DNA of 64,000 nucleotides, taken from sequence record ON568341.1; one strand, given 5' to 3'. The notes beneath the pieces were generated by a model. It had not been told where the DNA came from. It ran no database searches and saw only the letters and a list, made by a program, of their open reading frames with translations. This document shows, in pieces, positions 27,541 to 64,000 of this stretch (within the stretch, counting starts at the first letter, position 1; every line of letters starts with the position of its first letter). The position numbers and the translations under genes were made by a program.

Positions 27541-27569
27541 TTGACAGTACTTAACAATTGTAGTATCAT
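27541..27569 (+). promoter_or_regulatory. Sigma70-like promoter TTGACA-17-TATCAT
   Basis: Canonical -35, 17-nt spacer, near-consensus -10, upstream of the endonuclease gene. Confidence 0.6.
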
Positions 27570-27603
27570 ACGTGTAAATAAAGAAAAGAACTCGGAGAAA
27601 ATC

Positions 27604-32183: not shown

Positions 32184-32486
32184 ATGGCTAAATCTAAAAA
32201 AGAAGTTAAAGTAGAAATTCGTGATCTAAACGATGAACAACGTAAACGTCTCGGTGATGCACTTAATAACATTGTTGTACAACTTACTTTCATTGATGAT
32301 ACCAAAGCATCCTTGTCAGATTTTGTTTCTAGTATTTCAGATGAACTAGGTATCAATGCATCTGATATCAAGCAAGCTGCACAGCGTATGTACAAAGGTG
32401 ATTACTTTGATAAACAAAGCAAACTAGATAACATCGAAACTATCCTAAGTGTTACTAATAATCTACCACAAGCAGATGATTACTAA
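32184..32486 (+). CDS. dsDNA-binding protein (T4 DsbA/GapR-like)
   Basis: ISDELGINASDIKQAAQRMYK resembles T4 DsbA (AKDELGVDGKMFNRLLALYHK) in size and pattern. Confidence 0.6.
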   Translation: MAKSKKEVKVEIRDLNDEQRKRLGDALNNIVVQLTFIDDTKASLSDFVSSISDELGINASDIKQAAQRMYKGDYFDKQSKLDNIETILSVTNNLPQADDY

Positions 32487-32565: not shown

Positions 32566-35500
32566 ATGTATATCGATGCTTATATGGAACGTAAACGTAC
32601 TGGTGATATTCTTCATGTTGTGGAACGTAAAAATGGTAAACGCATTCTACGTGAATTGGACCCAGTATATGAATATTATGTTGAATCACCACAAGGAACA
32701 CATAAAACTGTTTATGGTACAATGGCTAAACATTTTGAGTTTCAAACCCAAGCTCAAATGAATAAAAGTGTAGAGAAACACAAAAGTGAAGGTCTACGTA
32801 TTTTTGAAAGTGATTGTAATATCATATTCAAAACCTTAGCTAAAGAATATATGGGGAAAGGTTCACCAGATTTGAATATCGTATTCTTCGATATTGAGAC
32901 TGACTTCCATAAGAAATTTGGTTATGCTCCACCATCGGACCCATTTAACCGCGTAACTGCTATTTCTTTATATCAATCATGGACTGGAAAAGATTATGTA
33001 CTTACTTTACCACCAGTTGATATGGAAATTTATGAAGCACAAGATATTGTTCGTAAACTAAATGAAGAAACAAATGATCCTAACAGTACTGTGATTCTAT
33101 ATACAGACGAAAAGGAAATGTTTATGGAATTCTTTAGTTTAATTGATGACTCTGATGTTATTTCAGGATGGAATAGTGAATTTTTTGATATTCCATATAT
33201 GATCAATCGAACTAAAAAAATCTTCAATGAAGCAACGACTGCTCGTTGGTGTTTATGGAATAAAAAACCAAATTCACGTGAAGCCGATAACTTTGGAAAA
33301 ACTGTACAAACTTATGATCTGGTAGGACGTGTTCATCTAGATTACTTGGCTTTGTATAAAAAACATGCTGGGCAAGTTGAACAATCTTATAAACTAGATT
33401 ATATTGCTGAAAAAGTAACAAAAGAAAATAAAGTATCTTATGAAGGTTCATTGGATAAACTTTATAGAGAAGATTACATTACTTTCTTGCGTTATTCTAA
33501 ACAGGATAGTATTCTTCTTAAAAAGATTGATGCTAAATGTGACTATATCAACCTACACAATCGTCTTGCACATAAAGAGTGTGTACTTATTAGTACAACA
33601 ATGGGTTCAGTAGCACTAATTGACACTGCTATTATTAACTTAGCACATAGCCGTGGTGAAGTTGTTTTTAACAAAGCACCTAAAGACGATGTTGAGTTTG
33701 ATCCAGAAATGGAATATTATAGTGATGATGGTGAAGATGAAGAAGAGAAAATCAGTGCAAAAGCCGCAGGTGCATGGGTACAAGATCCAGTTTTGGGACT
33801 TGTAAGTGACCTTGGATGTACTGACTTTAACTCTCTTTATCCTACAGTTCTACGTACATTGGGAATGAGCACAGAATGTATTCTTGGTCAATTACGTCAA
33901 GATTATACGGATGCGTATCTTGCAGCTAAAATTCAGGAACAGAAAAATAAATCCAAATCTAGATCATTTGAACCAGACTGGACTGCCGCATGGCATGGTT
34001 TGTTTGCTGCTGTTGAGTTCACTATGGTTCATGAAAAGTCAGAAGAAACATTGATTGTAGATTTAGAAGATGGGAGTTCTTTTAAAGCAACTGGAAAAGA
34101 ACTATATGATATTATTTTTGCAGAAGATAGTACTATTGTTCTAAGTGCAAATGGAACCTTGTTTGATAAATCAAAATCTGGTGTAATTCCAGATATTCTT
34201 ACACAATGGTATTCTGAACGTAAAGCTCAACAAAAAATGGTTATTGATTACAAACATATGTGTACTGATGGTTGGGAGTTTAATGGTCATGAAAAAGTTG
34301 AACCACTATTGACAAACTATACCCCAGGAACTATGTTTAGAACTAATATCCATGATAACGATCCTGTATACTTACTTCGCAAAGAAATTGGCAAAGGACA
34401 ATGGGATGAAGTTGCTAAGTTGATTGTAGAAAATGGATTAGTACTTAAAGATGGTCGCATTTACTGTCCTAAAGAAGAAAAAGATTACTTCAAACAACGT
34501 AGTGCTTTCTGGAAACAGAACCAACAGATTCGTAAAATTCTTCTAAACAGTCTATATGGTGCACTACTGAACAAAGGTTCTCGTTTCTTTGATAAGCGTT
34601 TGGGTCAATCTGTCACATTAACTGGTCGTTCGATGACTAAGCATATGGCAAGTCGTATCAATGAAATTACAACTGGTGTATATATTCATCACGGCGGTTC
34701 TGTGATCTATGGGGACACTGACTCTGTGTACTTTAGTGTAACGCATTATCTAAAAGAACAAGGCATTCCATATAATTTATCTAAAGAAGAAATTGTTGAT
34801 ATGTATATTAAAATTGGTGAAGAAGTTGGTGAATCTTTTCCATCATTTATGCATCAAATGTTCAACACTGGTATTGAAAAAGGTAAGATTGTTGGGGCAG
34901 ACCTTGAGATGGTTGGTTCCCGTGGATTATTCTTGAAGAAAAAACGTTATGCAATTTTGAAGTACTGGGAAGATGGATTTCGCAAAGATATTGATGGTAA
35001 ACCTGGTGAAATCAAAGCTATGGGTCTTGAAATTAAACGTTCAGATACACCAAAATACATCCAGAACTTCCTAGAAGAGACTCTAATTGCACTACTGGTA
35101 GGTGAGAATGAACAACAGTTAAAACAGCGTGTACGTGCTTTTAAGGACGTATTTAAAGATATGCCTGTGCATGAAAAAGGCTCACCAAAAACTGTAAAAA
35201 ACTACACAAATTTAGAGGCCGAATATCAACTAACAGGTAAGTGTAAGGTTGGGCACGTTCTTGCTGGTATTCAATGGAACCGCTTACGTGAAGTTTATGA
35301 TGATAAAACTGTCCCAGAAGTAACTGATGGAACAAAAGTAATTGTTTGTAACTTAAAAGATAATCCAATGGGGATTAAAGCAGTTGGTTATCCAATTGAC
35401 TGTGTTGAGTATCTACCTGAATGGTTCTTAGAACTACCATTTGACACTGAAAAAATGGAAGAGATTGTTCTAACTAAAAAATTAGAGAATATTTTTGGTA

Positions 35501-35571
35501 TTTTAGATATGGATATTGGTATTCATGAAAAAAGTACTGCATCAGTAAACAATGGATTCTTCACTTGGTAA
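32566..35571 (+). CDS. gp43: Family B DNA polymerase
   Basis: Exo I FDIETD, DFNSLYP, KILLNSLYG, YGDTDS, KKRY motifs. Confidence 0.97.
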   Translation: MYIDAYMERKRTGDILHVVERKNGKRILRELDPVYEYYVESPQGTHKTVYGTMAKHFEFQTQAQMNKSVEKHKSEGLRIFESDCNIIFKTLAKEYMGKGSPDLNIVFFDIETDFHKKFGYAPPSDPFNRVTAISLYQSWTGKDYVLTLPPVDMEIYEAQDIVRKLNEETNDPNSTVILYTDEKEMFMEFFSLIDDSDVISGWNSEFFDIPYMINRTKKIFNEATTARWCLWNKKPNSREADNFGKTVQTYDLVGRVHLDYLALYKKHAGQVEQSYKLDYIAEKVTKENKVSYEGSLDKLYREDYITFLRYSKQDSILLKKIDAKCDYINLHNRLAHKECVLISTTMGSVALIDTAIINLAHSRGEVVFNKAPKDDVEFDPEMEYYSDDGEDEEEKISAKAAGAWVQDPVLGLVSDLGCTDFNSLYPTVLRTLGMSTECILGQLRQDYTDAYLAAKIQEQKNKSKSRSFEPDWTAAWHGLFAAVEFTMVHEKSEETLIVDLEDGSSFKATGKELYDIIFAEDSTIVLSANGTLFDKSKSGVIPDILTQWYSERKAQQKMVIDYKHMCTDGWEFNGHEKVEPLLTNYTPGTMFRTNIHDNDPVYLLRKEIGKGQWDEVAKLIVENGLVLKDGRIYCPKEEKDYFKQRSAFWKQNQQIRKILLNSLYGALLNKGSRFFDKRLGQSVTLTGRSMTKHMASRINEITTGVYIHHGGSVIYGDTDSVYFSVTHYLKEQGIPYNLSKEEIVDMYIKIGEEVGESFPSFMHQMFNTGIEKGKIVGADLEMVGSRGLFLKKKRYAILKYWEDGFRKDIDGKPGEIKAMGLEIKRSDTPKYIQNFLEETLIALLVGENEQQLKQRVRAFKDVFKDMPVHEKGSPKTVKNYTNLEAEYQLTGKCKVGHVLAGIQWNRLREVYDDKTVPEVTDGTKVIVCNLKDNPMGIKAVGYPIDCVEYLPEWFLELPFDTEKMEEIVLTKKLENIFGILDMDIGIHEKSTASVNNGFFTW

Positions 35572-39620: not shown

Positions 39621-45972
<6,352 letters not shown>

Positions 45973-49581: not shown

Positions 49582-50400
49582 ATGACAAAATTAAATGAAT
49601 TCTTATCAAATATAGCAGTTCTTGATACTGAAACCACTGGTGTTGAAAGTGATGATGATATTATTGAATTTAGTATCTCATATCCATATACTTCACATGA
49701 AAACATTGATACTATTGATAACTATACATTGCGATATAAACCACTGAAAGATATTCCACCAGAAGCATCGGCTGTTCACTTTATCAGTACTGAGGATGTA
49801 GCTAATTGTGTTGGGTATAAAGATGATTTAGATAACATAGATGCACTTATGGGATGCCGTAAGTATTTTGTTGGTCATAATGTACAATTTGACCGTAGAA
49901 TGATGGTAGATAATGAATATAAATATCGTAACTCAGTTTCACAGTACTTACTCGATGAAGATAAATGGATTTGTACTCTTCGTTTGGCTAAGAAAATGTT
50001 TGCAGAAGATACCGAATATAAAAACTTAACTCTAAGTTATTTGTGGTATAAGTTTGGATGCCATCGAGATGTTCACAGACCTATTAATGCTCACGCGGCA
50101 AAAGATGATGTATTCATGTGTTATCAGGTTCTAATCAAATTGGTTGAAATTGCCATCGAACGTGGTCATATTGATTCCAATGGGGATATTGGTGAACAAA
50201 TAGTAGCTTTTTGTAACACCCCAATGCGTTATCAATTCATGCCATTTGGTAAACATAAAGGTGAGCCAATGAATACAGTACCATTGAATTACATTGAATG
50301 GATGATCACTAATAGTGACATTTTAGATGCAAGTAACCCTAACTGTGATAAAGATTTAGTATATACATTTGAGTACGAATATAATACTCGAACTAATTAA
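49582..50400 (+). CDS. DEDDh 3'-5' exonuclease (DnaQ/ExoX-like)
   Basis: LDTETTG, GHNVQFD, HAAKDD; C-terminal MPFGKHKG..VP.NYIEW. Confidence 0.9.
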   Translation: MTKLNEFLSNIAVLDTETTGVESDDDIIEFSISYPYTSHENIDTIDNYTLRYKPLKDIPPEASAVHFISTEDVANCVGYKDDLDNIDALMGCRKYFVGHNVQFDRRMMVDNEYKYRNSVSQYLLDEDKWICTLRLAKKMFAEDTEYKNLTLSYLWYKFGCHRDVHRPINAHAAKDDVFMCYQVLIKLVEIAIERGHIDSNGDIGEQIVAFCNTPMRYQFMPFGKHKGEPMNTVPLNYIEWMITNSDILDASNPNCDKDLVYTFEYEYNTRTN

Positions 50401-50415
50401 TAAAGGTAATCATGG

Positions 50416-51900
50416 ATGAAAACTTGTAAGTTAACCTTATTGGATGAGGTGAATTGTAAATTTGAGGGACTTGATCCCTCAATTAGACAAAAGATGATTC
50501 GTGCAACTGAATATGTGTTACCATATGCAAAGTTCACACCAGCAGGACGTATTGGACGTTGGGATGGTAAAGTTCAGTTTATGAATTTAGGTGGAACAAC
50601 TTATTATCATATGTTAGATAAGTTATTGCCTATTCTTGATGAAGCTAAGATTGACATTGAATTGGTAGATCATAGGGTAGATTATGGATTTAAATTTGAC
50701 CCTATTGATGAAGATATTTTTAGTGATGTTGTATTCGGTGCAGGACACCACATGGAAGGTAAATCCATAAAACTACGTGAACATCAAGTTAATGCGGTTA
50801 ATGCATGTTTGGCTAATCCACACGGATTACTATTGGCAGCTACTGGTGCAGGTAAAACACTCATTACTGCTGCATTGTCAAAGAAAGTGCAAGAGTATGG
50901 ACGTTCTGTTATAATAGTACCAAGTACTGACTTAGTACAACAAACATATGATGACTATATTATGTGTGGGTTGGATACTGGTATGTTCTATGGTTCACAA
51001 AAAGATTTTGGTCACCAACATACTATTACAACGTGGCAATCATTTAACTCTCTATGGAAGAAAACCAAGAAAGGTGAAATTGAATTAACTGAACAAGATG
51101 TTAATGATTTTATCGATGGAGTAGTTTGTGTTATCGTTGATGAGTGTCAAGGTGCAGGTGGTGACGCATTAGTTCAAGTACTATCTAAAGTTATGAACAA
51201 CGTACCATTACGTTGGGGTCTTACTGGTACAATTCCGAAAGATCCGGTTGTCGCCGCAAAAATCAAATGTAATGTTGGTGATGTTATATTTAAAATAACT
51301 GCAAAGGAATTACAAGATAAACAGATACTAAGTACATGTAATGTAAATTGCATAAAACTAAAAAGTAGTATGAAGTTTGCATCATATGCTGAAGAGTTGA
51401 AATACTTAGTAACTGACAGAGATAGAATGGCATATGTAGCATCATTGATATCTGCGTTATCTGAATCAGGAAACACTTTAGTTTTAGTAGATAGGCTTGA
51501 AGCGGGTGAGTTGTTATGTGAATTTTTAGGTATTCCCAAATCAGAATTTGTTCGTGGAGAAACTAAAAAGAAAGATCGAGAATCATCATATGGTGAAATT
51601 CGTTGGGCTGATAATAAAATACTTATTGCGACATACGGTGTTGCCAGTACTGGTATCAGTATTTCAAGGTTATACAATGTAGTATTGATTGAGCCAGGAA
51701 AAAGTTTTGTAAGAACTATACAATCAATCGGACGTGGATTACGCCGAGCAGAAGATAAAGACCATGTGGAAATATATGATATTAGTGGTTCTAATAAGTA
51801 TAGTGCAAAACATTTACGTGAACGTTTAGCATATTATAAGGAAGCACAATATCCGCATAGTATAATAGATGTTAAAGATTGGGAAAACACAGCGGGATAA
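50416..51900 (+). CDS. uvsW: SF2 DNA helicase UvsW
   Basis: ATGAGKT, VDECQ, GLTGT, STGISI, QSIGRGLR. Confidence 0.92.
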   Translation: MKTCKLTLLDEVNCKFEGLDPSIRQKMIRATEYVLPYAKFTPAGRIGRWDGKVQFMNLGGTTYYHMLDKLLPILDEAKIDIELVDHRVDYGFKFDPIDEDIFSDVVFGAGHHMEGKSIKLREHQVNAVNACLANPHGLLLAATGAGKTLITAALSKKVQEYGRSVIIVPSTDLVQQTYDDYIMCGLDTGMFYGSQKDFGHQHTITTWQSFNSLWKKTKKGEIELTEQDVNDFIDGVVCVIVDECQGAGGDALVQVLSKVMNNVPLRWGLTGTIPKDPVVAAKIKCNVGDVIFKITAKELQDKQILSTCNVNCIKLKSSMKFASYAEELKYLVTDRDRMAYVASLISALSESGNTLVLVDRLEAGELLCEFLGIPKSEFVRGETKKKDRESSYGEIRWADNKILIATYGVASTGISISRLYNVVLIEPGKSFVRTIQSIGRGLRRAEDKDHVEIYDISGSNKYSAKHLRERLAYYKEAQYPHSIIDVKDWENTAG

Positions 51901-51943: not shown

Positions 51944-52384
51944 ATGTGGAATAAAATGGAATTGAGATCTAGTATTGCTTTTGTCTGTGACCAAGAAACG
52001 TTAGAGGTTATGGATGTATTGTTGAATGATGATGGTATTATGGATGACATGGTGTCTTCTCTTGACTATATTCCTGAACTAGAAACGGATGATACTAACG
52101 TATGGAGATGTAACATTGATGGCGATTCGTGGATTAATATCTATGAATTACAAACACGAATTGATTCTAAGGTTGAATCATTGAAATATGATATCATCTA
52201 TGCAAGTACTGATACAAAAACTTTTATTGATGTAGTAAGTCTAAGTGGTAATTTTGATTCATATCTTGATACTGATGTGGATAAAATTCAAGAGATGTGT
52301 GATACATACGGACTTGAATTTTATGGTGCAGAAGATTTGGATGACGAAGACTATTACGATGATGAAGAAGAATCACAGTACTAA
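51944..52384 (+). CDS. Acidic hypothetical protein
   Basis: 146-aa ORF; start 51944 or 51956. Confidence 0.65.
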   Translation: MWNKMELRSSIAFVCDQETLEVMDVLLNDDGIMDDMVSSLDYIPELETDDTNVWRCNIDGDSWINIYELQTRIDSKVESLKYDIIYASTDTKTFIDVVSLSGNFDSYLDTDVDKIQEMCDTYGLEFYGAEDLDDEDYYDDEEESQY

Positions 52385-52393
52385 GGAGACGAT

Positions 52394-52891
52394 ATGAACG
52401 TATTAACACCAGAAAATACATCTTTTGATATGGATTTAGTAACAGAACATATCCCTGAAGAAATGTATTGTGTTTTGGATTTAAGTCCAAATGGTGAATC
52501 TGATTTTTATTTTAGACATATTCTAAACACCGTATCATTTAATAGTATTAGTGCTGATCTTCAAATTGGTGAAAAGATTATTCAAGTGCCTTTAGGATGG
52601 CAAATTATGTTAGGGGATGAAGAAACTGGTATGGTTGAGATGTGCACAATTGAAAACATTCTCAACATGAAAGAACCAAAAGCTTTTGTTTATAATCCTA
52701 TCCGTTCGATGTATCCTAAGTTTGAGCCAGTAAAAGTACTACGTGTATTTGCTTTAACAACTAAGTGGCAAATTCCAATGCTACCGAAAAAGAATTTACT
52801 CTGTGTGCCGTTACATAGTGGTGAAAATCCACCATGTGTGTACTTTGCAGATGAAAATGAAAAAATTCAAGATTTGTATCTAGGAGTATAA
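52394..52891 (+). CDS. Conserved hypothetical protein
   Basis: AAGGAG SD; QVPLGWQIMLGDEE and KWQIPML motifs. Confidence 0.7.
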   Translation: MNVLTPENTSFDMDLVTEHIPEEMYCVLDLSPNGESDFYFRHILNTVSFNSISADLQIGEKIIQVPLGWQIMLGDEETGMVEMCTIENILNMKEPKAFVYNPIRSMYPKFEPVKVLRVFALTTKWQIPMLPKKNLLCVPLHSGENPPCVYFADENEKIQDLYLGV

Positions 52892-52895
52892 AATA

Positions 52896-53738
52896 GTGTT
52901 TGATTTCAGTGATATTAAAAATAAGTCAGTCGATGATGATAAACCAACACAGCAGTCTTTTTCTATTGCTGAATTTCTAAAACATATTGACCGTGCTGAT
53001 TATAAGTTCTATAATGACATGACAGAAAAAGAACGAAAAGAGTTTACACCTTATACTGTTTTGCGATGGGTAAGCTCTTTGGATGATTCTCTTCAAGTTA
53101 CATATCCAAGTAGTAAAGTTGAAAAAGTATTTGGTAAATGGAAAGCTGGTGGTAAGGAAACATTAACTGAACTAGTAACTGAATTGAAGTCTTCTGGGAC
53201 TAATGTTTCATCAGTAACCAAGTACTGTCACGGTGACTATGATTGGCGTATTAAATTTGCGGTTCAATCTAAAGATGCCGCACAAAAATTAATATCATCA
53301 ATGACAGAATTTGGTGTAACTGGTTCGGAAATTGTGTCATTAGTAGATACTGAAGTTGTAAAATATCAACTTATTATGCTGAATGACATGGTTAATGATG
53401 GTTTTTGGGATATGAAAGAACATCCAGAATTAGTATATCAACTTATGTGCTCAGTGCATGATATGATTGGTGGACAAGAAATGCCCCGTAATTGGTTGAA
53501 TTTTTCTAAAAATTTCAAAAAAGCAAACAATGAACTATTTGAATTAATTAAAAGTTCACAACCTGATACTATTTCTACTCAAATGAATGAAGATGAATAT
53601 AAAATTGTTTTATTACAGTATGATAAAAAATCATTTGAAACATTTCTTGACAATAATGGTTTACAAGATAATGAAAAGAAATCTATGATGAAATTGTTTA
53701 AAGATGAATGTAAAAAATATGGCAAAGAAATCAAGTAA
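52896..53738 (+). CDS. Clamp-loader small subunit-like protein (gp62-like) with internal insertion
   Basis: FTPYTVLRWVSS...LNDMVN...HPELVYQLM pattern resembles gp62-type proteins; GTG start after AGGAG. Confidence 0.5.
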   Translation: MFDFSDIKNKSVDDDKPTQQSFSIAEFLKHIDRADYKFYNDMTEKERKEFTPYTVLRWVSSLDDSLQVTYPSSKVEKVFGKWKAGGKETLTELVTELKSSGTNVSSVTKYCHGDYDWRIKFAVQSKDAAQKLISSMTEFGVTGSEIVSLVDTEVVKYQLIMLNDMVNDGFWDMKEHPELVYQLMCSVHDMIGGQEMPRNWLNFSKNFKKANNELFELIKSSQPDTISTQMNEDEYKIVLLQYDKKSFETFLDNNGLQDNEKKSMMKLFKDECKKYGKEIK

Positions 53739-54429
53739 TAAAGTATACACCTGTAAATTTTGTGACCGTGAATTTAAACGAGAAGAAACTGTCAGCACAC
53801 ATAAATGTATAAAACGTGACCGATACGAAGACCGCCAAAGCCGCCAGATGATGGAGGCTTTTCGTATATATATGCAATTTATGGAATTGAATAAGTTCCC
53901 ATTTAAAAAAGGCGTGGAGCCTTTTATTGCTTTTATAAAATCGAAGTACTTTAATGATTTTTATAGTTTCGCAGAATACTATTTGAATAATAGAGATATT
54001 ATAAATGTGGACGAGTTTGTAAAGAACTTGATTATCACTAACAGACCAATTACTGAATGGAGTACGTATAAAGCAAAAGATGAATGGATATTAAAAACTA
54101 TTCGTGCAGAACATCCAAAAGAAGCTATTGCACGAAGTGTAATATCATTGGTTGAATGGGCTGAAAAGTTGAATGTACAATGGAACACTTTCTTTGAAAA
54201 TGTAAGTTCTGCTCGTGCAATTGCATGGATAGAGAGTGGTAAAATTTCACCGTGGATTATATGGCTTGCTCCTAAAAAAAGTACTAATAAGTTTTTTAAA
54301 AAACTATCAAACTCAGAAATTGAATATATACTTAAATACATCGATCCAAGTTATTTTGAAATAAAAACTATAAAATACAAAAAGGATTGTGATGAAATTA
54401 AGATTATGCTATGTGAGGCAGGATTATGA
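53719..54429 (+). CDS. Zinc-finger hypothetical protein
   Basis: YTCKFCDREF...THKC N-terminal finger; GKISPW motif. Confidence 0.75.
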   Translation: MAKKSSNKVYTCKFCDREFKREETVSTHKCIKRDRYEDRQSRQMMEAFRIYMQFMELNKFPFKKGVEPFIAFIKSKYFNDFYSFAEYYLNNRDIINVDEFVKNLIITNRPITEWSTYKAKDEWILKTIRAEHPKEAIARSVISLVEWAEKLNVQWNTFFENVSSARAIAWIESGKISPWIIWLAPKKSTNKFFKKLSNSEIEYILKYIDPSYFEIKTIKYKKDCDEIKIMLCEAGL

Positions 54430-54755
54430 ATGGAAAAAGTATATATAACAAAATACCAGAAGGGTATGTACCTGTACCTAAAGAACAAAAATCAAAACAA
54501 ATATCTCTACTTAGACAAGGATCTATTACTGAAATAACACTAGATGGCAAAACATTTCAAGTTCACGATCCGGCTCGTGTTGAAAAAATAATTTCTTTAG
54601 TTGAAAGACATGAAGAGCGATTTTTTAGTTTGAGTCAGGAGTTAGCAAAGACAAAACAAAATTGTAAAATATTAGAGAAACAAATATCAACGTTAGTTAA
54701 TACAGTTAAACAGTTACAGGAGCAAATAAAAAATGCAGGATTTGACCGATTCTAA
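54426..54755 (+). CDS. Coiled-coil hypothetical protein
   Basis: ATGA overlap; heptad-rich C-terminal half. Confidence 0.65.
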   Translation: MNGKSIYNKIPEGYVPVPKEQKSKQISLLRQGSITEITLDGKTFQVHDPARVEKIISLVERHEERFFSLSQELAKTKQNCKILEKQISTLVNTVKQLQEQIKNAGFDRF

Positions 54756-55371
54756 ACATTATAGAAAGGCCCGAACTGATATTGACATTGACTTCAAGGA
54801 TAGTAAAAGTGTAATTGCAAAACTTCCTTGTGTACGAAGTACTGAAAAAATTACGGAGGATGGTTTAATCCCCCATAATAGTGGTGTTCATTTTGACAAT
54901 ATACCAACTGATCCAATTACTGGTTTGGCTAGTATACAATATAAAGAAGCTGAAAGGTTAGGATATCAAAAAGTTGATATTCTTTCACAGTCAGCTTACG
55001 TGTATGTTCGTGATAGAGAACATTTAAAAGAACTAATGAATCAGGAACCAAATTGGGATTTATTGTTAGAACCCGAAATAGTAGAGCATCTCTCGCAAAT
55101 TAAAAAACATGTAACATTGTTAAATGTATGGAAGCCTAAATCAATCGACGAACTGGCAATGTTTATTGCCATGATTCGCCCAGGAAAAAGGCAGTGCCAA
55201 AGTATGAACACATGGGACGAGGTAAAAGCCACCATATGGGACTACAGTACTATTGGCACGGACCAAGCAGGAAATAAATTACGATATTTCAAAAAGCCAC
55301 ATGCTTATGCATATAGCTTAATGATTGTTGTTCAACTAAATGCTTTAGTTGAACATCTTACTTCTTCTTAA
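54733..55371 (+). CDS. Minimal DNA polymerase III alpha (DnaE)-like catalytic core
   Basis: TDIDIDF, HNSGV, KVDIL, PKSIDELAMFIAMIRPG, FKKPHAYAY in DnaE motif order. Confidence 0.8.
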   Translation: MQDLTDSKHYRKARTDIDIDFKDSKSVIAKLPCVRSTEKITEDGLIPHNSGVHFDNIPTDPITGLASIQYKEAERLGYQKVDILSQSAYVYVRDREHLKELMNQEPNWDLLLEPEIVEHLSQIKKHVTLLNVWKPKSIDELAMFIAMIRPGKRQCQSMNTWDEVKATIWDYSTIGTDQAGNKLRYFKKPHAYAYSLMIVVQLNALVEHLTSS

Positions 55372-55710
55372 GTGCCACATTACGACGTTTGATGCGTTTC
55401 TGTGGCAAATTGCTTAAAGAAACTACTGGACCACATACGAAATTCACCGATTGTGTATCGAATCTCTGTGTGTACGGTTCAAATTTCTCCATCTCTTCTT
55501 GAAAGAATAGACAAACTGGAATGGTTCTATTACTTTGCCACCACCAATCATGTGCTATACTTAACAATTCGTCTTGCATTGATTCATTCATATCATCGAA
55601 ACAATAAAGAGTTGTATACTGTTTGCTTTTGATTTTGATGATACCAATAAACGTTTTACCATCATACTGGATTACAGTAATGAATGGTGGGATAGTGTTA
55701 TATGATTCAT
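55358..55710 (-). CDS. Conserved WWWxSN-motif protein; reading frame extends upstream of the track start but lacks an in-frame ATG
   Basis: Frame of 55358-55591 stays open for 39 more codons (ESYNTIPPFITVIQYDGKTFIGII...) to 55708. ATG at 55710 is 1 nt out of frame. Late promoter at 55748-55754. Confidence 0.6.
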
Positions 55711-55719
55711 ATTAGTTCC

Positions 55720-55754
55720 ATAAATATTAGTATAAATTTATACCTATTATTTAT
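55720..55754. promoter_or_regulatory. Divergent late promoters ATAAATA (+ 55720-26; - 55748-54)
   Basis: Both cores read directly between the divergent genes. Confidence 0.6.
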
Positions 55755-55767
55755 GGAAGGAAAAACT

Positions 55768-56745
55768 ATGGCTCATCACGGCGTGTTTATGTACCCTTAT
55801 AATCAGGAAGTATCATTGGGCAATTTTAATATGCCATTTAGTAATGAAAAACTAACTATCTATCGAGGGGCAAATAATAATTTATCTTTTACTGTTCACA
55901 ACGCTGATGGAAAATATACTTTATTGAAAGATAATGAATATCTTACATTTATGATTTTTGATGCACGAAATAATACTAAACTATTTGATGTTGTATTGGA
56001 AAAGCAAGAACCAAGTTGGTTATCAGAAAGTGGTCAAGCTCGTCAAACATTGGGAAATAAAAAGAAAGTATACTATGGATGTATTGTTCCAGCAGGAGTT
56101 ATTCAAGATACCAGTCCTGGTTCTAAATATAGATGGAGCATTACTAAAGTAACTATGGATGGTTCACTTATAGAACCAACACAATATCTATACACTGGAA
56201 TGAACTTTGAGGCATCAGCGGAGCTAATAATTTCAGACCAAGCAGCCCCAGTATTTGTTCCTAGTACTGAAATATCTACAGACAAAAATTCAGCCTGGAC
56301 ATCAATAAAGCGTTTATATAATGAACCAATTGGTAATGGTATGATAGGTGAGTATGATATACTCGCATCAACTCCACTTCCAGCACAAATGCAGTATGGG
56401 TTGGTTGATGGGCTAAGTAGCATTGCAATCTATTTTGATAAATTCATTGGAAGAATACAGTTACAAGGATGTTTGTGTAATAATGTACCTAATGATAATG
56501 AAAATTATAAATGGTTTATAATCAAATTAGATGGAAAGGATTATATTGAAAATGGGATTGATATTGATGGATTTCCAAAAGAACTTGATGGTATTCAAGC
56601 ATTTAATTTCAAAGGAAATTATATGTGGTTGCGAATCGTAGTAGCAATTCATCCTAAAAATGTTCCAGTACCATACGACTATGCTGCTGTGCGAAAAGTG
56701 TATGATCCTTTATTAACTGTACCTAAAATTTTGATTCGCAGGTGA
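55768..56745 (+). CDS. Putative virion structural protein
   Basis: LTIYRGANNNLSFTVHNADGK beta-rich N-terminus; late promoter; start moved to 55768. Confidence 0.65.
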   Translation: MAHHGVFMYPYNQEVSLGNFNMPFSNEKLTIYRGANNNLSFTVHNADGKYTLLKDNEYLTFMIFDARNNTKLFDVVLEKQEPSWLSESGQARQTLGNKKKVYYGCIVPAGVIQDTSPGSKYRWSITKVTMDGSLIEPTQYLYTGMNFEASAELIISDQAAPVFVPSTEISTDKNSAWTSIKRLYNEPIGNGMIGEYDILASTPLPAQMQYGLVDGLSSIAIYFDKFIGRIQLQGCLCNNVPNDNENYKWFIIKLDGKDYIENGIDIDGFPKELDGIQAFNFKGNYMWLRIVVAIHPKNVPVPYDYAAVRKVYDPLLTVPKILIRR

Positions 56746-56771
56746 GACAAAATTAGAAGGTGTGCTATAAT
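56742..56771 (+). promoter_or_regulatory. GTGAGACA-16-TATAAT promoter
   Basis: Upstream of primase/helicase. Confidence 0.8.
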
Positions 56772-56800
56772 CATTTGTAAGAAAAGACAAGGATTAACTT

Positions 56801-57856
56801 ATGAACGCTGTACAAAACATAATGGCACAAATAATGAATGATCCAGTACCTTCAATTGGTACATGGTCACATCACAATTGTCCCGCTTGTGTGTTCAGAG
56901 GACATTCAAGGCCGGATACAAAGCACCGTGGTAATCATATGTTCAATGCAGATGGTTCCGTATCATATAACTGCTTTAACTGTAGTTTAAAAACGGGTTG
57001 GCAGCCTGGAAAATATATGAGCAAAGATATGGAGTCTTTGCTCATTTCTTTTGGTGCACAAGATAAAGAAATAGAATTAGTTAAGTTTTATATTAAAGAA
57101 ATGGTTGATAGTGGAGATTACGCTACACAAGAAACGGTTGTATCAAAATTATATGATAGAATAACTGTGCGTGATTTACCATCAAATGCTAAAACATTTT
57201 GGGAATGGGCTTCGTTACCAGAAGACAAAATTCCCCGAGAATTTTTGAGTGTTTTGCATAACGTCAATGAAAGAAACCCATACTTATTAGATTTAGAATT
57301 ATATTGGTCACCCAATAAAGAACATAAAATGTATGATAGATTTATTATTCCTTATTTCATGAATGGGAAAATCATTGGATACACAGCAAGACACAAATTA
57401 AAAGATCCCGGAAGTACATACAGGTTTATAAATCAAGTAAGTACAAATATACTATATAATTATGATTTATTAAAAGATGATAGAATAAAAACAATTTTAG
57501 TATGTGAAGGGCCGTTGGATGCTGCATTGATGGGTGGAGTATCTGCAAATAACTTTAAACTATCCAATGTACAAATTGATGTATTAAAAGATGCACAACA
57601 AAAAGGTAAAAAAGTAGTTATTGTTCCAGACCGAGACAAAGATGGGTTAATAACAATAGAACAAGCACTTGAAAATGGATTCAGTGTGTCGTTCCCAGAC
57701 TTTGGTGCAGTTAGAGAAGGGAGTACTATACGTCACATCAAAGATTTCGAAGAAGCGTGTTCACGTTTTGGAAGGTTATTTTGCTTGCAATTAATACACG
57801 ATAGTATAGTAGATGAGCCATTTTATATAAAAGCTCAAACAGAAAAATGGATGTAA
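56801..57856 (+). CDS. gp61: DNA primase
   Basis: CPAC...YNCFNC zinc ribbon, IIPY...IIGYTAR, VCEGPLDA, VPDRDKDG TOPRIM motifs. Confidence 0.92.
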   Translation: MNAVQNIMAQIMNDPVPSIGTWSHHNCPACVFRGHSRPDTKHRGNHMFNADGSVSYNCFNCSLKTGWQPGKYMSKDMESLLISFGAQDKEIELVKFYIKEMVDSGDYATQETVVSKLYDRITVRDLPSNAKTFWEWASLPEDKIPREFLSVLHNVNERNPYLLDLELYWSPNKEHKMYDRFIIPYFMNGKIIGYTARHKLKDPGSTYRFINQVSTNILYNYDLLKDDRIKTILVCEGPLDAALMGGVSANNFKLSNVQIDVLKDAQQKGKKVVIVPDRDKDGLITIEQALENGFSVSFPDFGAVREGSTIRHIKDFEEACSRFGRLFCLQLIHDSIVDEPFYIKAQTEKWM

Positions 57857-57878
57857 TACATATAATGAGGGAACATAG

Positions 57879-59399
57879 ATGATTCAAAGCACAATGGATG
57901 TGAAACAATATGGGATTAATGCACAACAATACTTATTATCTCAGATTTTCAGTAATCCTGATTTATATGTACGTTGTAAAAATATCCTTAAACCTGAATA
58001 TTTTGATAAAACATTTCATGAAAGTATTAAGTACGTTCATGATTATGCAGCAAAATATAGTTCATCACCAACTTTAAAAGATATTGAAGTTAAAGGTGGT
58101 TATCAATACGACCAATATGAAGTTCAAGAATTACATAAACAATCAGTACTGGATACATGTGGTGAATTTTGCCGACACAAAGCATTAGCATTAGCTGTGG
58201 AAAAGGGAATGGAACTTGTCCATCAGAAAAAATATGGTGGGATAGAAGAACTAATTCGTGAAGCAATGCTGGTAACTGTACAGAATGAGTTAGGTTTGGA
58301 CATTTTTGAAAATCCAGAAGATACTATTCGTTCACTAAGTTCAATGCAAGGGTCATTTAAGAGTGGATGGGAAACACTTGATTACAAACTTTTCGGTGGC
58401 TTTGGGCGTAGAGAGTTAGAGATTTTTGCGGCTGCATCAGGTGGTGGTAAATCAGTAGTATTGCAAAATTTAGCAGTTAACTTTGCTAAAGCTGGAATGA
58501 ATGGTGCATACATCTCTCTAGAACTAGCTGAAGAGTTAGTTGCGGTTCGTATTTATGGTATGATGACTGAATCGAAACTCAGTAACGTAAAAAATGAAGC
58601 TGAAAAGATTGGATTTGCTGTTAAAGTTGAAGGTAAAAACAGTGGTATGTTGCGTATTAAACGCTTACCTGAATCTGTGACAACAACGGACGATATCGAA
58701 AGTTATCTACGTGAATTACAAATTAAGATGGAAATCAAACTTGATTATGTATGTGTGGACTATTTGGACCTATTAACTTCTAATCGTCTTGGACCAAATG
58801 ATAAATCCAATACATTTACTAAAGATAAATTTGTATCAGAAGAATTACGTGCTCTTGCATCAAAAATGGATTTGACTGTATTCACGGCATCTCAGTTTAA
58901 CCGTAGTGGCATGGACGAAGATAAGAAAAGTCAAAGTCAGATTGCTGGTGGTATTTCAAAAATTTATACTGCGGATAACGTAATTTATATTGAAGCAAAA
59001 AAAGACACTGGGGAATTATGGTTTGATTTTCAAAAAACACGTAACAGTAGTGCAGTAGGTTCTCGCTTACGTATGTCCTATGATATTGACTCATTGCGAG
59101 TTCTTGATCACGCAATTACAGTACAACAAATGGAAACAGAAGGTAACGGATTCCGTCACAGTGGTGTTTCTAAGATTGGTGGAGGAAATATGGCATTACC
59201 TCCTAGTACAATGCAAACATTGCGTCATACGCTTTCTGGTACATCAAATTCATTATCTACACAACCAAACAAACAAGTATTACTAAATACTGAGAGTGCT
59301 CCTAACACAACAACACAAAATGAATTACAGCCCCCGCAGCCACATGCAGGTTCTGAACGTGTTCATGCAATGAAGCAATGGTTAAATCAAAGGAAATGA
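57879..59399 (+). CDS. gp41: DnaB-like replicative helicase
   Basis: AASGGGKS, YISLEL, VDYLDLL, TASQFNR, KTRNS. Confidence 0.93.
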   Translation: MIQSTMDVKQYGINAQQYLLSQIFSNPDLYVRCKNILKPEYFDKTFHESIKYVHDYAAKYSSSPTLKDIEVKGGYQYDQYEVQELHKQSVLDTCGEFCRHKALALAVEKGMELVHQKKYGGIEELIREAMLVTVQNELGLDIFENPEDTIRSLSSMQGSFKSGWETLDYKLFGGFGRRELEIFAAASGGGKSVVLQNLAVNFAKAGMNGAYISLELAEELVAVRIYGMMTESKLSNVKNEAEKIGFAVKVEGKNSGMLRIKRLPESVTTTDDIESYLRELQIKMEIKLDYVCVDYLDLLTSNRLGPNDKSNTFTKDKFVSEELRALASKMDLTVFTASQFNRSGMDEDKKSQSQIAGGISKIYTADNVIYIEAKKDTGELWFDFQKTRNSSAVGSRLRMSYDIDSLRVLDHAITVQQMETEGNGFRHSGVSKIGGGNMALPPSTMQTLRHTLSGTSNSLSTQPNKQVLLNTESAPNTTTQNELQPPQPHAGSERVHAMKQWLNQRK

Positions 59400-59402
59400 T
59401 AA

Positions 59403-59675
59403 ATGTCTAGTAAATCCAATAAAAAGAATCTACTTGATAGTATAGTTGACTATACCCCAGAGAAAGATACGTTACAGAGTTTTAGTAATCGTGCAGACCA
59501 TGCAATAAACTCTGTGATTCATTTGTTGGAGAGCATTGAAGATGAATTTAACCAAACTGATGCTGAAGATTTGAAAAAGCGTTTATTTCTAAGTATAAAA
59601 AACCGAGATTATAAAAAGTTTCAAAAAGGGTTAGAGAATATAGCACTTGATGAAAAACGTAATAAGGGTCATTAA
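59403..59675 (+). CDS. Hypothetical protein
   Basis: 90-aa ORF, NRADHAINSVIHLLESI...RLFLSIKNRD. Confidence 0.65.
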   Translation: MSSKSNKKNLLDSIVDYTPEKDTLQSFSNRADHAINSVIHLLESIEDEFNQTDAEDLKKRLFLSIKNRDYKKFQKGLENIALDEKRNKGH

Positions 59676-59676
59676 T

Positions 59677-59841
59677 ATGAAGAAAAAGAATATTAAAGAG
59701 AATGCATCCACAGCATCTACTTCGGCAGGTGCAATTGCATCTGTCAGCACTGGTTTACATTATCCATTACATCGTAGATTGCCTCCAACTAACTTCTTTG
59801 GGTATAAAGTAGTAGAGATAAAAGATAAGGATAAAGAATGA
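59677..59841 (+). CDS. Small protein with capsid-N-terminus-like motif
   Basis: IKENASTASTSAGAIASV; AAGGG SD. Confidence 0.55.
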   Translation: MKKKNIKENASTASTSAGAIASVSTGLHYPLHRRLPPTNFFGYKVVEIKDKDKE

Positions 59842-60230
59842 AACCCTATACTTTCTACACGATACATACTGTAGTAGATATTGGTGACGGTAAAACCCCA
59901 ACAATCATAGATTCAAAATTCACTGGTGCTATGAACTTGTCTAGATTGTTGGAAGCAATTATGGTATATGATTATCCTATGATGGTAAGTGTTGTTAAAA
60001 ATGAAGTTGATTTATATAAAGATAATAATTCATCTTTTTATAATATACCAATTACATGGGGTAAATGTACAATAAGCACATTTAAATTCGCTATACCAAT
60101 GGATGTTGAACTTCGATTACATGGTATTCCATTAGTTCTACCAACTGAACTAAATGGAAAACGAATAACTAAATTTATCACATCTGGTGATGATATCAAC
60201 ATTAGCATCAGTAAACAGACCTTTTCTTAA
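59838..60230 (+). CDS. Hypothetical protein
   Basis: ATGA overlap, 130 aa. Confidence 0.65.
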   Translation: MKPYTFYTIHTVVDIGDGKTPTIIDSKFTGAMNLSRLLEAIMVYDYPMMVSVVKNEVDLYKDNNSSFYNIPITWGKCTISTFKFAIPMDVELRLHGIPLVLPTELNGKRITKFITSGDDINISISKQTFS

Positions 60231-60235
60231 TTGTG

Positions 60236-60242
60236 ATAAATA
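60236..60242 (+). promoter_or_regulatory. Late promoter ATAAATA
   Basis: Upstream of 60288 (GGAG SD). Confidence 0.65.
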
Positions 60243-60287
60243 TCATAAAGCAAGACAGAGGTCTTTTTTATTTTTTATGGAGAAAAT

Positions 60288-61232
60288 ATGGATATAAACC
60301 AAACAGCAACAGAACTTCAAAAGTTCGCAGACGCACATAATTTGAATGTTGATGTTTCTGTCATTCTTGATAATATGGATGCAGGTGATTTCATTACTTT
60401 AAATTCTGCGATTGATAATTCCGATAATCGTGAAATATTTCAAATTTTGCAAAAATATAAAGCACAGATGAGTGAGTGTTATGAATATTTCAGTACTAAT
60501 AATTTGAATAAACATATCAATGAAAGTACTGAGCTACATAGCATTGTTGATGCAATGACTCTAAAGCAACTGGAAGAGACATACACTAAAAAATATACTT
60601 ATTCTGATACATCGAAGCTAACTACCCAAGAATTAAAAGCGATTGTATTTGAAGATTTTCAAAATCAAGCAACTCAAATGCAATCTAAGCAAATTGCTAA
60701 AATGAATGTTTCACAAGGACAACAGCAAGTTAATCCACAAACTCAAGCGAAAATAAAACAGGCTGAGTTACAAAGGAACGCTAATAATATGAAAGTTAGT
60801 GTTCCGGGAACACAAAGCGGTACTGATTCAGTAGAACCTGTTGTTGGTGTAGATCCAGGTCAAACACCAGAGCAAACATTGGTAATTACTAAAAGCGGTA
60901 CTAAACCAAATGAGTTAAATGTTTTCCCATTGAATGATGTTAATCCTATCGATAACCAAAATAATCCAATACGTGAGGAAAAATCCCCACAAGAAATTAA
61001 CAGTGAACTAATGGGAGATGCAAGCTTAGAGCCTGATAGTAATCCTGATTCACCATCACCATTATCATATCATGCACCTGGTATGGGTGAAATGATTCAT
61101 GCTATTTCTGATATTGAAAAGGAAGATGATATTTATGGTGATGAAAGTGTAATGGCAAATCAGTCGCAATCTGATAATGATGATATGGTAGATCAAATTA
61201 TTGATTATTGTCATCGTATGCGAGGTCGCTAA
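60288..61232 (+). CDS. Late hypothetical protein, probable internal head protein
   Basis: Q/N/P-rich low complexity, INE/S candidate protease site. Confidence 0.7.
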   Translation: MDINQTATELQKFADAHNLNVDVSVILDNMDAGDFITLNSAIDNSDNREIFQILQKYKAQMSECYEYFSTNNLNKHINESTELHSIVDAMTLKQLEETYTKKYTYSDTSKLTTQELKAIVFEDFQNQATQMQSKQIAKMNVSQGQQQVNPQTQAKIKQAELQRNANNMKVSVPGTQSGTDSVEPVVGVDPGQTPEQTLVITKSGTKPNELNVFPLNDVNPIDNQNNPIREEKSPQEINSELMGDASLEPDSNPDSPSPLSYHAPGMGEMIHAISDIEKEDDIYGDESVMANQSQSDNDDMVDQIIDYCHRMRGR

Positions 61233-61450
61233 TGAGAACAGTACTGAATGTGTATGGTCATAATACGATGGTTTCCAATGAAGAATACAAACTATTACAA
61301 AAGATAAAAGCACGTGATACTGTTCCAGTTGAAAAGGTTAATGAATATTATCAAGAACTTGCTGATAAAATGGTATCACGCGGTGTTCTAAATAAAATAG
61401 AAAATGGTGATGGTACTGAATCATATCAAACAGTTAGGAGTAGTAAATGA
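61232..61450 (+). CDS. Small hypothetical protein (winged-helix-like pattern)
   Basis: TAATG coupling; LADKMVSRGVLNK. Confidence 0.6.
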   Translation: MRTVLNVYGHNTMVSNEEYKLLQKIKARDTVPVEKVNEYYQELADKMVSRGVLNKIENGDGTESYQTVRSSK

Positions 61451-62124
61451 ATTACGAATATGATCAACAATCAGTCAATCAGATGGCTGATTTGTTAAGT
61501 GGTCTTAATGATATTGAAGCTGGTGAGACACACAATGCGGCAGGTGTACCATATAAAGCTAGTGGTGATATTGGTGCAATGACCGCTATTTTAACTTCAT
61601 TAAATGAAGCGGGTATGGACTATGGTACTGAACCCGAACCTACACATCCGAACGTAGTGCCATATAACGCACCATTTAACGAACACATGAATGGACAACC
61701 ATATGTTCAGCCTATGGTACATCGTTCACCTCCTAAACCGAAAACCAACTGGAGTTTAGTTGAAGAAAAGGTACAAGGTACGAAATCTACTAAAGTTTAT
61801 AGCATTAAGTGTAACCATAGTTCACAAATTATCATGAATAATATTATGATGTATGAAGCAGCACTTACTTTAGTTAACCTTCTTAACGAAGGGAGAATGT
61901 TGACAGATGCTAAAATTCTTGGTATAATTAGTTCGGGTTTGCAATATACAAATGTTATAAGCGAAGCATTAAAAGCAGCCCATAAACGCCAACGTGTACT
62001 TAATGAATCAAAGTATGATGAAGCAAAAGATTTAGATATAATCATTGCAGAAAAGAAAGCAGAAGCTTATAAATTAAAAGAGCGTGTGTTAAACTTTCTT
62101 AAAAATGAAGGGTATATCACTTGA
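61447..62124 (+). CDS. Hypothetical protein, probable head protein
   Basis: ATGA coupling; LNE/S motifs; YEAALTLVNLLNEG. Confidence 0.7.
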   Translation: MNYEYDQQSVNQMADLLSGLNDIEAGETHNAAGVPYKASGDIGAMTAILTSLNEAGMDYGTEPEPTHPNVVPYNAPFNEHMNGQPYVQPMVHRSPPKPKTNWSLVEEKVQGTKSTKVYSIKCNHSSQIIMNNIMMYEAALTLVNLLNEGRMLTDAKILGIISSGLQYTNVISEALKAAHKRQRVLNESKYDEAKDLDIIIAEKKAEAYKLKERVLNFLKNEGYIT

Positions 62125-63872
62125 TTATAGATGAATTGAAGAAATTCTTAAAAAGCAAAAACAAAAAAACATGGGTTAAGTTGGTAAACAATAATGAAGT
62201 ATATTTTAAATATGTTCGTGAATTGTTCCCAACTAAACCCATGAATGAAGCATTATATCTTATAATGAACGATATGGTATGTGCACCATCTGCCCCATGT
62301 GGTTCTGAATGTAAATTTATTAATGGTTCATATGATAAGTATTGTTCTAAACCAACAAAACCAAACAAAAATCGTGATAATGGTTTTTGTGTAGTATGTA
62401 ATGAACATTGGAAGAACACCAAACTCAAAACTACTAAACAAAAATGCATTGATACTTATGGAGTCGAATACCATTGGCAAAGAAATGATGTAAAGGACAA
62501 AATAAAAAGTACTAATATGAAACGATATGGTGTTGAACACAATTCACATATCGAACATGTTCTTGAAAAACGAAAGGAAACTTTCATTAAAAGATATGGT
62601 GTTGAATCACCTTTGGCATCTGTTGAAATTCGTGATAAGATAAAAGCAACAAACATTGAAAAATATGGTGTTGAAAATTATGGAAGTACTGATGAATGTA
62701 TAGAAAAACGAAATAAAACAATGATGGATTTGTATGGTGTTAATAATGCACAACATGTAACGAAATTTTTAAATGAATCAAAGGTTACGAAAGCTAAAAT
62801 TAGGTATGATAAAATTTTATCTATTATTAACCCTTCATATAAAGAACTTTTTGAATATGATGACTTAATTGATTCTACTAATGAAAGTAAACTTCCGTAT
62901 TATTGTGAAATACACAAAGGGTTGTTTTATAGTAATTATAAATATGGTATAGTTTGTAGTGTTTGTAATCCACCCGTGTATAGTTCCATACAAAATGAAA
63001 TAAAGAATTTTGTGTCAACATTGACTGAATGTGACATTATTATGAATGATCGAAGTAATGGGTATGAATATGATATATACATCCCTGAACTTCAGATAGC
63101 AATAGAAGTTAATGGTATGTATTGGCACAAAAGTGATATGGTTGATAAGTATTATCATAGGGCAAAAACAATAAATTCAATCGAACGTGGTATTAGATTG
63201 ATACATATATTTGAAGATGAATGGTACAGTAAACAGAAAATTATTAAAAATAGATTAATGAACGTTTTTCAATGTTCTAGTAAGATTTATGCCAGAAAAT
63301 GTATTGTTAAAAAAATCAATACAAATATTTGTTATGATTTCCTAAACACTAATCATATACAAGGATATACTAGAACTGGAATAAACTATGGTTTGTTTTA
63401 TAAACAAGAACTGGTTGCAGTAATGACGTTCAGTAAAAGTCGATATGATAAAAAATTTGAATATGAGCTAATACGATACTGCTCACGTGGAACTGTTGTT
63501 GGTGGTGCTGGTAAATTATTGTCTGCATTTGAGCGTGATTACAAACCATTGTCGTTGATGAGCTACGCAGACTTGAATTGGGGTTCTGGACAGTTATACA
63601 TATCTCTTAACTTTGAAAATTTAGGATATACAGAACCAAAATATTTTTATTATGATCCAAAAACAAAACAGCGTTTTTCTAGACAAAAATTTAGAAAACA
63701 TAAATTGATTGAAATGGGATACAACTCATCTAAAACCGAAGAAGAGATATGCTTGGGTGAAATTGGATTGTATAAAATATACGATTCTGGCAATTGTAAA
63801 TTTGCTAAATATTATTACAACATAAACATTACAGGAGATATTGAAAAATGTCCAAATCGTACAAAAAACTAA
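62121..63872 (+). mobile_element. Second Hef-like putative homing endonuclease (paralogue of 27604-29199)
   Basis: About five YGVE repeats, EYDIYIPELQIAIEVNGMYWH, IYARKC...YELIRYCS...SYAD. Confidence 0.78.
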
Positions 63873-64000
63873 TGGAAACTGCTTCTCGTGCTGAAGCAAT
63901 GAAATTCATTAAATTGAATGAATCTAATATTGAAAAGGCAGAAATTGTCCTTTCAGTTAAAGGTGAAATTGTTGATAAATTACAACGTCAATCAGAGGTT
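63848..64000 (+). CDS. Partial hypothetical protein running off the right edge
   Basis: AGGAGA SD, ATG 63848, MSKSYKKLMETASRAEAMKFIKLNESNI... open to 64000. Confidence 0.6.
   Translation, partial: MSKSYKKLMETASRAEAMKFIKLNESNIEKAEIVLSVKGEIVDKLQRQSEV

Follow-up and report, generated by a model that had tools for sequence, protein, structure and literature searches.

A putative split, thumb-less DNA polymerase III core encoded beside a family B DNA polymerase in the giant Escherichia phage UE-S1

Introduction

The palm of a Pol-beta-like nucleotidyltransferase requires a strand, the GS loop and a helix ahead of the catalytic aspartates to hold the triphosphate. In DnaE, the fingers touch both the incoming dNTP and the template. 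The Pol-beta fold has proved versatile, and enzymes built on it have repeatedly evolved terminal transfer, RNA tailing and the synthesis of second messengers. That the catalytic subunit of a C-family polymerase need not be encoded as a single chain is well established for cyanobacteria, where dnaE is present as two distant genes whose products are joined by protein trans-splicing.

The closest described system is found in large phages. In a computational description, Iyer, Anantharaman, Krishnan, Burroughs & Aravind (Iyer et al. 2021, Viruses 13:63, PMC7824862) reported for group 2.2 jumbo phages a minimal Pol III alpha that is split in two. Its N-terminal unit binds the NTP and its C-terminal unit binds Mg2+ and the template; the two are encoded by distant genes, other Pol III domains are lacking, and a family B polymerase is present alongside. 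The authors suggested that the split Pol III serves in repair or synthesizes one of the strands, presented it as a model of the ancestral form, and named Atu_ph07 as a member of group 2.2 (PMC7824862). PF07733 is among the markers of one jumbo-phage cluster (Weinheimer and Aylward 2022). Our literature search, which omitted most subscription journals, yielded no biochemical or genetic study of the split Pol III.

Here we describe such a pair of genes in Escherichia phage UE-S1 (ON568341.1, 358,076 bp), a giant E. coli phage of the genus Asteriusvirus and the 121Q/RaK2 group. The analysis started from the last 64 kb of this genome (64,000 nucleotides, hereafter the window), and genome-wide statements draw on the UE-S1 entry in GenBank and on relatives. 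The split arrangement was already known from Iyer et al. (2021), whose reading agrees with ours, and the UE-S1 pair is the same thing with nothing different in kind. New in the present work are a scored fold search, the precise position of the break, the finding that the thumb is lost entirely, two conserved gene modules and a linked gene for a zinc-finger protein.

Results

The C-terminal unit

The open reading frame under study extends from position 54733 to 55371 of the window on the plus strand, encodes 212 amino acids, starts with ATG and carries a GGAG sequence 10 nt upstream of the start codon. We refer to its product as the C-unit, the C-terminal unit of a split minimal Pol III alpha, an assignment based on its protein family, a fold model and a set of invariant residues. 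Positions 53700-56800 of the window match positions 347776-350876 of the UE-S1 record with 100% identity. All motifs on which the original prediction for this frame had been built are present and collinear, i.e., TDIDIDF (residues 15-21), HNSGV (48-52), KVDIL (80-84), PKSIDELAMFIAMIRPG (135-151) and FKKPHAYAY (186-194). This set of motifs is more than a chance resemblance.

The C-unit falls into phrog_11778 of the PHROGs collection, designated 'DNA polymerase' (E 6.6e-108 over residues 9-211). A word search returned 789 relatives, with lengths of 157-220 aa among those listed, and at least 589 viral contig stretches encoding a C-unit are present in IMG/VR. It had been anticipated that short frames of this kind may already be annotated in relatives. 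This is indeed the case: the orthologue in phage 121Q, gp16, appears as 'DNA polymerase' in RefSeq, and the frames for the C-unit and for its counterpart described below both already bear the label DNA polymerase in RefSeq and in several GenBank records. In 25 homologues sharing 40-99% identity, residues D16, D18, D20, H48, G51, K80 and D82 proved invariant, as did R149, P150, K187, H190 and Y194. The three catalytic aspartates that the original prediction considered retained (D18, D20 and D82) are thus kept throughout. Comparison with phage 121Q revealed 33 synonymous and four non-synonymous differences, corresponding to a dN/dS of 0.025, and neither a decay signature nor loss of the aspartates was found. 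A promoter scan yielded a site count no higher than in shuffled sequence. In wastewater RNA libraries only short contig pieces of relatives were encountered, for which DNA carry-over is possible.

An AlphaFold2 model of the C-unit was built on the homologue alignment and reached a mean pLDDT of 90.0 and a pTM of 0.78. When this model was searched against the PDB with Foldseek, the top 13 matches were Pol III alpha chains with probabilities of 0.6-1.0 and a best E-value of 1.8e-3. VIA-align of residues 9-212 gave a Z score of 10.0 to 3e0d_A (Taq Pol III alpha, residues 456-841; rmsd 3.8, 202 residues), followed by 9.9 to 5lew (M. tuberculosis DnaE1) and 8.7 to 2hnh (E. coli, residues 397-784); these three alignments cover about 200 of the 212 residues. 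Scores of 6-7 were obtained with chains titled only 'DNA polymerase' and aligned at residues 966-1304, which we read as PolC-type. The 13 best chains all belong to the C family (Pol III alpha or PolC-like), and the best unrelated chain scored 3.9. The structure prediction therefore bears out the proposal that the protein is collinear with the palm and fingers of Pol III alpha.

Sequence comparisons place the motifs in the same register. With hhalign, K80 and D82 of the C-unit align with K553 and D555 of E. coli DnaE and RPG aligns with RPG (E 0.077, not significant alone); with HMMER, DIDIDF falls onto DIDIDF of M. tuberculosis DnaE1 (PDB profile, E 0.83, again not significant alone). Pfam reported DNA_pol3_finger (PF17657) alone, with an E-value of 0.045 and 13.5 bits, under the cut-off of 22, and the C-unit stays under the gathering score for both DNA_pol3_alpha and DNA_pol3_finger. 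Because such links to DnaE by sequence only are weak, the identity of the C-unit rests on the fold, the motif register and the existence of a complementary unit. According to the model, the C-unit is the second half of the palm, with D18 and D20 forming the DxD motif and D82 within KVD as the third aspartate, joined to shortened fingers that contain the RPG (residues 149-151) and KKxH (187-190) motifs.

The nucleotide-binding unit

The designation of the C-unit as a DnaE core in the original prediction is apt insofar as the protein is a palm and finger piece derived from Pol III alpha; the core is not self-sufficient, and the nucleotide-binding half resides on a second protein, the N-unit, encoded about 33 kb away. 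A search of the 121Q genome with PF07733 led to gp56, an ORF of 172-180 aa located about 31 kb downstream and matching the model at positions 16-95. The score of the N-unit is 37.9 bits against a cut-off of 23.9. In UE-S1, the corresponding gene (UES1_042, positions 32463/32529-33005 of the UE-S1 record and outside the window) is annotated as 'DNA polymerase III' and is likewise recognized by PF07733. Its product of 172-180 aa is 97% identical to 121Q gp56, and the distance of about 33 kb from the C-unit gene is counted onward across the terminal repeat of the genome. The N-unit also matches phrog_11127 and positions 360-429 of phrog_405, the family of full-length Pol III alpha. Members of the N-unit family share an invariant W-G-x-G-R-G-S-S-V ... 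D-S-x-K ... E-F block that includes the GRGSS loop.

The two units occur together. A separate N-unit frame of 164-199 aa is present in nine of 12 long IMG/VR contigs with a C-unit, and in all five C-unit contigs that are at least 90% complete. In near-complete genomes, the genes are tens to hundreds of kb apart; no N-unit gene was located within 6 kb of the C-unit gene (0/80 loci), and no C-unit gene within 8 kb of the N-unit gene (0/9 loci). Across 50,697 GenBank phage records, the C-unit was detected in 96, and the tallies for both units are equal for most of the listed genera. The exceptions are Klebsiella phages, with 11 versus 10 records, and phages encoding a full-length DnaE, which are picked up with the N-unit but not with the C-unit. 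Homologues of both units are encoded in Atu_ph07.

As stated in the original prediction, a family B DNA polymerase is encoded alongside. The gene (32566-35571, plus strand) specifies an enzyme of the T4 gp43 type with its own exonuclease domain (phrog_262, E 2.8e-217; PF03104, E 3.5e-23; PF00136, E 1.7e-21), which is presumed to be the main replicase. Family B polymerases (PF00136) were present in 11 of 12 genomes with a C-unit, among them all five near-complete ones. In one distant relative from IMG/VR, the family B polymerase appears to be distributed over two frames of 616 and 567 aa that lie about 2 kb apart (around 115.7-119.4 kb), which may reflect a split gene or an insertion.

Split point and missing domains

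The point at which the polymerase chain is interrupted can be read from the termini of the two proteins. The spacing between GRGS and (E/R)FL amounts to 29 residues in the phage N-unit and in E. coli DnaE alike. Most N-units end with EFLK, equivalent to RFLN390 of E. coli, plus one to four residues, and the C-unit begins just ahead of DIDIDF, the equivalent of E. coli DFDVDF401. In the DnaE register, the end of the N-unit and the start of the C-unit thus place the break inside one and the same palm loop, spanning residues 390-401 of E. coli DnaE. Starting only 15 residues ahead of DxD, the C-unit is devoid of the first palm strand, of the GS loop and of the helix that together hold the incoming nucleotide. 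No GS loop is present on the chain with the catalytic aspartates, and the GRGSS loop sits on the N-unit.

The C-unit is also internally shortened. DxD and the strand carrying HxGG (HAGGV in E. coli) are separated by 32 residues in the C-unit versus 110 in E. coli, i.e., 78 residues fewer. This deficit equals the length of the E. coli thumb, for which we take the limits given in the literature, residues 433-510, and the whole thumb is therefore gone. The domain account of the original prediction had missed this loss and was incomplete in this respect. Some 80 more finger residues are absent between RPG and KxH. The absence of PHP, clamp-binding and OB domains from the C-unit, as originally described, holds. 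Moreover, five near-complete genomes of relatives gave no match to the models for PHP (PF02811) and for the helix-hairpin-helix clamp-binding domain (PF14579, HHH_6); both models did recognize the control genomes. Missing a thumb and about 80 finger residues, the enzyme could have an activity other than processive templated synthesis.

Gene neighbourhoods of the two units

Counts for the gene module around the C-unit were taken over 80 divergent IMG/VR loci, where many of the misses fall at contig ends. The order is UvsW, a 165-aa ORF, sometimes a 280-aa ORF, a zinc-finger protein, the C-unit, a DnaG-type primase and a DnaB-type helicase, and it recurs in loci whose C-unit shares just 37-47% identity. 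In the window, the UvsW-type helicase is encoded at 50416-51900 (plus strand; Pfam ResIII and Helicase_C, phrog_16) and was found in 58/80 loci. The 165-aa ORF (52394-52891, plus strand; phrog_11279, no Pfam match) follows UvsW in 61/80 loci and may encode a UvsW accessory protein. Between these two genes UE-S1 carries a 146-aa ORF (51944-52384, plus strand) that is restricted to close kin (2/80 loci). Downstream of the C-unit gene follow the DnaG-type primase (56801-57856, plus strand; phrog_47, E 7.6e-32; 62/80 loci) and the DnaB/gp41-type helicase (57879-59399, plus strand; phrog_19, E 9.2e-70; DnaB_C, E 3.7e-17; 52/80 loci).

The UE-S1 genome has a terminal repeat of 8,298 bp, represented by positions 55703-64000 of the window. 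Because this repeat begins 331 bp past the C-unit gene, the genes for primase, DnaB helicase and several virion proteins are present twice in the linear genome, and the C-unit gene is single-copy.

Zinc-finger and coiled-coil ORFs upstream of the C-unit had been put forward as coupled neighbours. This proposal stands for the former and not for the latter. The zinc-finger protein of 241 aa (53704-54429, plus strand; phrog_11058, unknown function; zf-C2H2) is encoded upstream of the C-unit in 75/80 loci, and its stop codon overlaps the start of the C-unit gene in 19/72 loci. It was found in 94 phage records, versus 96 records with a C-unit, and for the listed genera the counts are identical. An N-terminal finger of the C2HC/C2H2 type (C-x2-C-x12-H-x-C) has invariant residues C17, C20, H33 and C35, and zf-C2H2 matches 21 of 23 members. 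The model (pLDDT 92.7) exhibits an all-helical body for which no PDB match exceeded Z 4.5; in Foldseek, the zinc finger itself was the sole match, and the protein atlas yielded unnamed phage clusters only. The conserved linkage makes the zinc-finger protein a credible candidate for an accessory subunit. Roles as a helicase loader of the T4 gp59 type or as a DnaE thumb found no support (best VIA-align Z 4.5): similarity to gp59 (1c1k_A) is limited to the C-terminal halves with Z 3.9, within noise, hhalign gave E 0.81, and the gp59 profile PF08994 had no match in five genomes.

The coiled-coil ORF of 109 aa (54426-54755, plus strand; phrog_14909, E 3.1e-47) lies between the zinc-finger and C-unit genes. 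It shares an ATGA overlap with the former (54426-54429) and a 23-nt overlap with the latter (54733-54755). It was detected in only two of 80 loci, both from close kin, in a tblastn search that a short coiled coil may escape. As a conserved partner of the C-unit it is thus unsupported, and it appears lineage-specific. Note that both 54426-54755 and 55702-56745 carry a virion structural annotation in 121Q and flank the C-unit gene inside the replication cluster.

A stand-alone 3'-5' exonuclease similar to DnaQ/epsilon is encoded at 49582-50400 (plus strand; RNase_T, E 5.3e-15; phrog_192). This enzyme may be a partner of the mini polymerase. Its presence in 5/12 C-unit genomes and in only 2/5 near-complete ones rules out that it is an obligate proofreading partner.

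The N-unit gene is part of a module of its own, consisting of the N-unit, a small ORF of phrog_14844, a GroES-like protein and a gp44-type clamp loader; the first three were found in 9/9 distant genomes and the clamp loader in 8/9. The phrog_14844 gene, situated directly downstream of the N-unit gene (UE-S1 record 33072-33416; 121Q gp57), specifies a 114-aa protein of unknown function, another candidate partner of the mini polymerase.

Two further features of the window are recorded here. The large subunit of the terminase (41889-44549) comprises 886 aa versus 545 aa in phage 121Q. A LAGLIDADG/homing-endonuclease domain occupies its residues 284-364 and precedes the match to Terminase_6N (residues 430-637), so that the insert looks like an intein in the packaging ATPase. 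In addition, a 552-aa homing-endonuclease-like ORF (27541-29199; phrog_3339, DUF7487, weak restriction-endonuclease-like match) is located amid structural genes.

Discussion

We consider it probable that the N- and C-units of UE-S1 join non-covalently to form a split mini Pol III, a thumb-less, template-directed DNA polymerase that exists beside the family B replicase. The C-unit would supply the two-metal DxD strand, the strand with the third aspartate and the shortened fingers, and the N-unit would contribute the strand ahead of these, together with the GRGSS loop and the triphosphate-holding helix. As the chain is broken in the loop corresponding to residues 390-401, the two proteins would have to assemble through a shared beta-sheet and thereby complete a Pol-beta-like active site. 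The resulting enzyme would be small, thumb-less and clamp-less, probably distributive and template-directed, and would act alongside the T4-type family B replicase. Since the C-unit gene is grouped with those for UvsW, the zinc-finger protein, primase and DnaB and the module of the N-unit includes a clamp loader, work at primed or recombination-started sites is suggested, that is, in the primosome or in recombination-dependent replication.

The mini Pol III might even be a machine of three parts. The zinc-finger protein would then replace the thumb or the clamp-binding parts, or tether the enzyme to primase and helicase, and the enzyme would extend primers or D-loops before handing over to the family B replicase. 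Such a machine would be a minimal viral equivalent of the way in which DnaE and PolC, or Pol alpha and delta, share their work. We regard this more elaborate version as unlikely.

In principle, the two units may also assemble into something other than a DNA polymerase, namely a terminal transferase, an RNA tailing enzyme or a synthase for nucleotide second messengers. The deletion of the thumb and of much of the fingers fits such a function, as do the absence of a clamp-binding domain and the repeated evolution of these activities in families with the Pol-beta fold. However, the finger helices with RPG and KKxH are specific for DnaE, retained and invariant, the fold of the C-unit matches C-family polymerases only, and the genes reside in replication modules, with primase and helicase in one case and a clamp loader in the other, rather than in defence or counter-defence islands. 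The retained template-binding fingers likewise argue against the tailing or signalling role that had been among the original suggestions. We therefore hold a non-polymerase pair to be rather improbable.

Still less can be said for the original proposal in its strict form, according to which the C-unit alone acts as a minimal nucleotidyltransferase that primes, tails or signals and is helped by its immediate neighbours only. The three aspartates and the finger motifs do reside on a single chain, and the zinc-finger gene is tightly linked. Yet the elements that bind the triphosphate in every transferase of the Pol-beta fold, the first strand and the GS loop, are not on this chain, and precisely the missing part exists as the separate, co-occurring and equally strictly conserved N-unit. 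A stand-alone C-unit is accordingly very unlikely.

Another reading sees in the pair a leftover without catalytic function that persists as a replisome scaffold or DNA-binding factor. It would accommodate the strong reduction relative to DnaE and the fact that no activity is on record. Scaffolds usually lose residues for metal and nucleotide binding, whereas in both units these residues are all invariant down to 32-40% identity, and the dN/dS of 0.025 for the C-unit speaks against such a remnant. We give this idea hardly any credence. Finally, joining of the halves by a split intein, for which cyanobacterial dnaE offers a precedent and the intein-like insert in the terminase a parallel within the window, is practically excluded and was rejected on length, as intein halves need about 100 and 35 residues and just one to four follow EFLK in most N-units and 15 precede DxD.

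Returning to the split mini Pol III, its relation to known polymerases can be specified. With bacterial DnaE and PolC (2hnh, 3e0d, 5lew) it has the palm and finger fold in common (Z 8.7-10.0), and the aspartates of DxD and KxD, the GS loop, RPG and K-x-H occur in the same order and register in the phage pair. The latter comprises about 385 aa in two chains compared with about 1160 aa in one chain for DnaE, and does without the PHP, thumb, HhH clamp-binding, OB and tau-binding domains as well as about 80 finger residues. The split DnaE of cyanobacteria is likewise a C-family catalytic subunit encoded by two distant genes; it is divided at another site, whereas the phage protein is split inside the palm and has no intein halves, so that any assembly must be non-covalent.

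A functional parallel may exist with replisomes that employ two polymerases, such as DnaE and PolC in B. subtilis or Pol alpha and Pol delta/epsilon. There as here, the smaller polymerase is associated with primase and helicase, in the phage by gene position, and stands beside a proofreading replicase. By analogy, and judging from synteny only, the mini Pol III may extend primers before hand-off to the family B enzyme. To our knowledge, T4 gp43 itself needs no primer-extending helper.

If active, the pair, with about 385 residues in two chains, would be smaller by a wide margin than any other DNA polymerase of the C family, and its palm, divided through the beta-sheet, would be an arrangement rarely met among polymerases. 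It would then mark out the smallest catalytic core with which this family of bacterial replicases can work. The split mini Pol III also prompts the question why hundreds of large phages, equipped with a complete T4-type replisome, maintain a second polymerase, and it bears on the origin of C-family polymerases.
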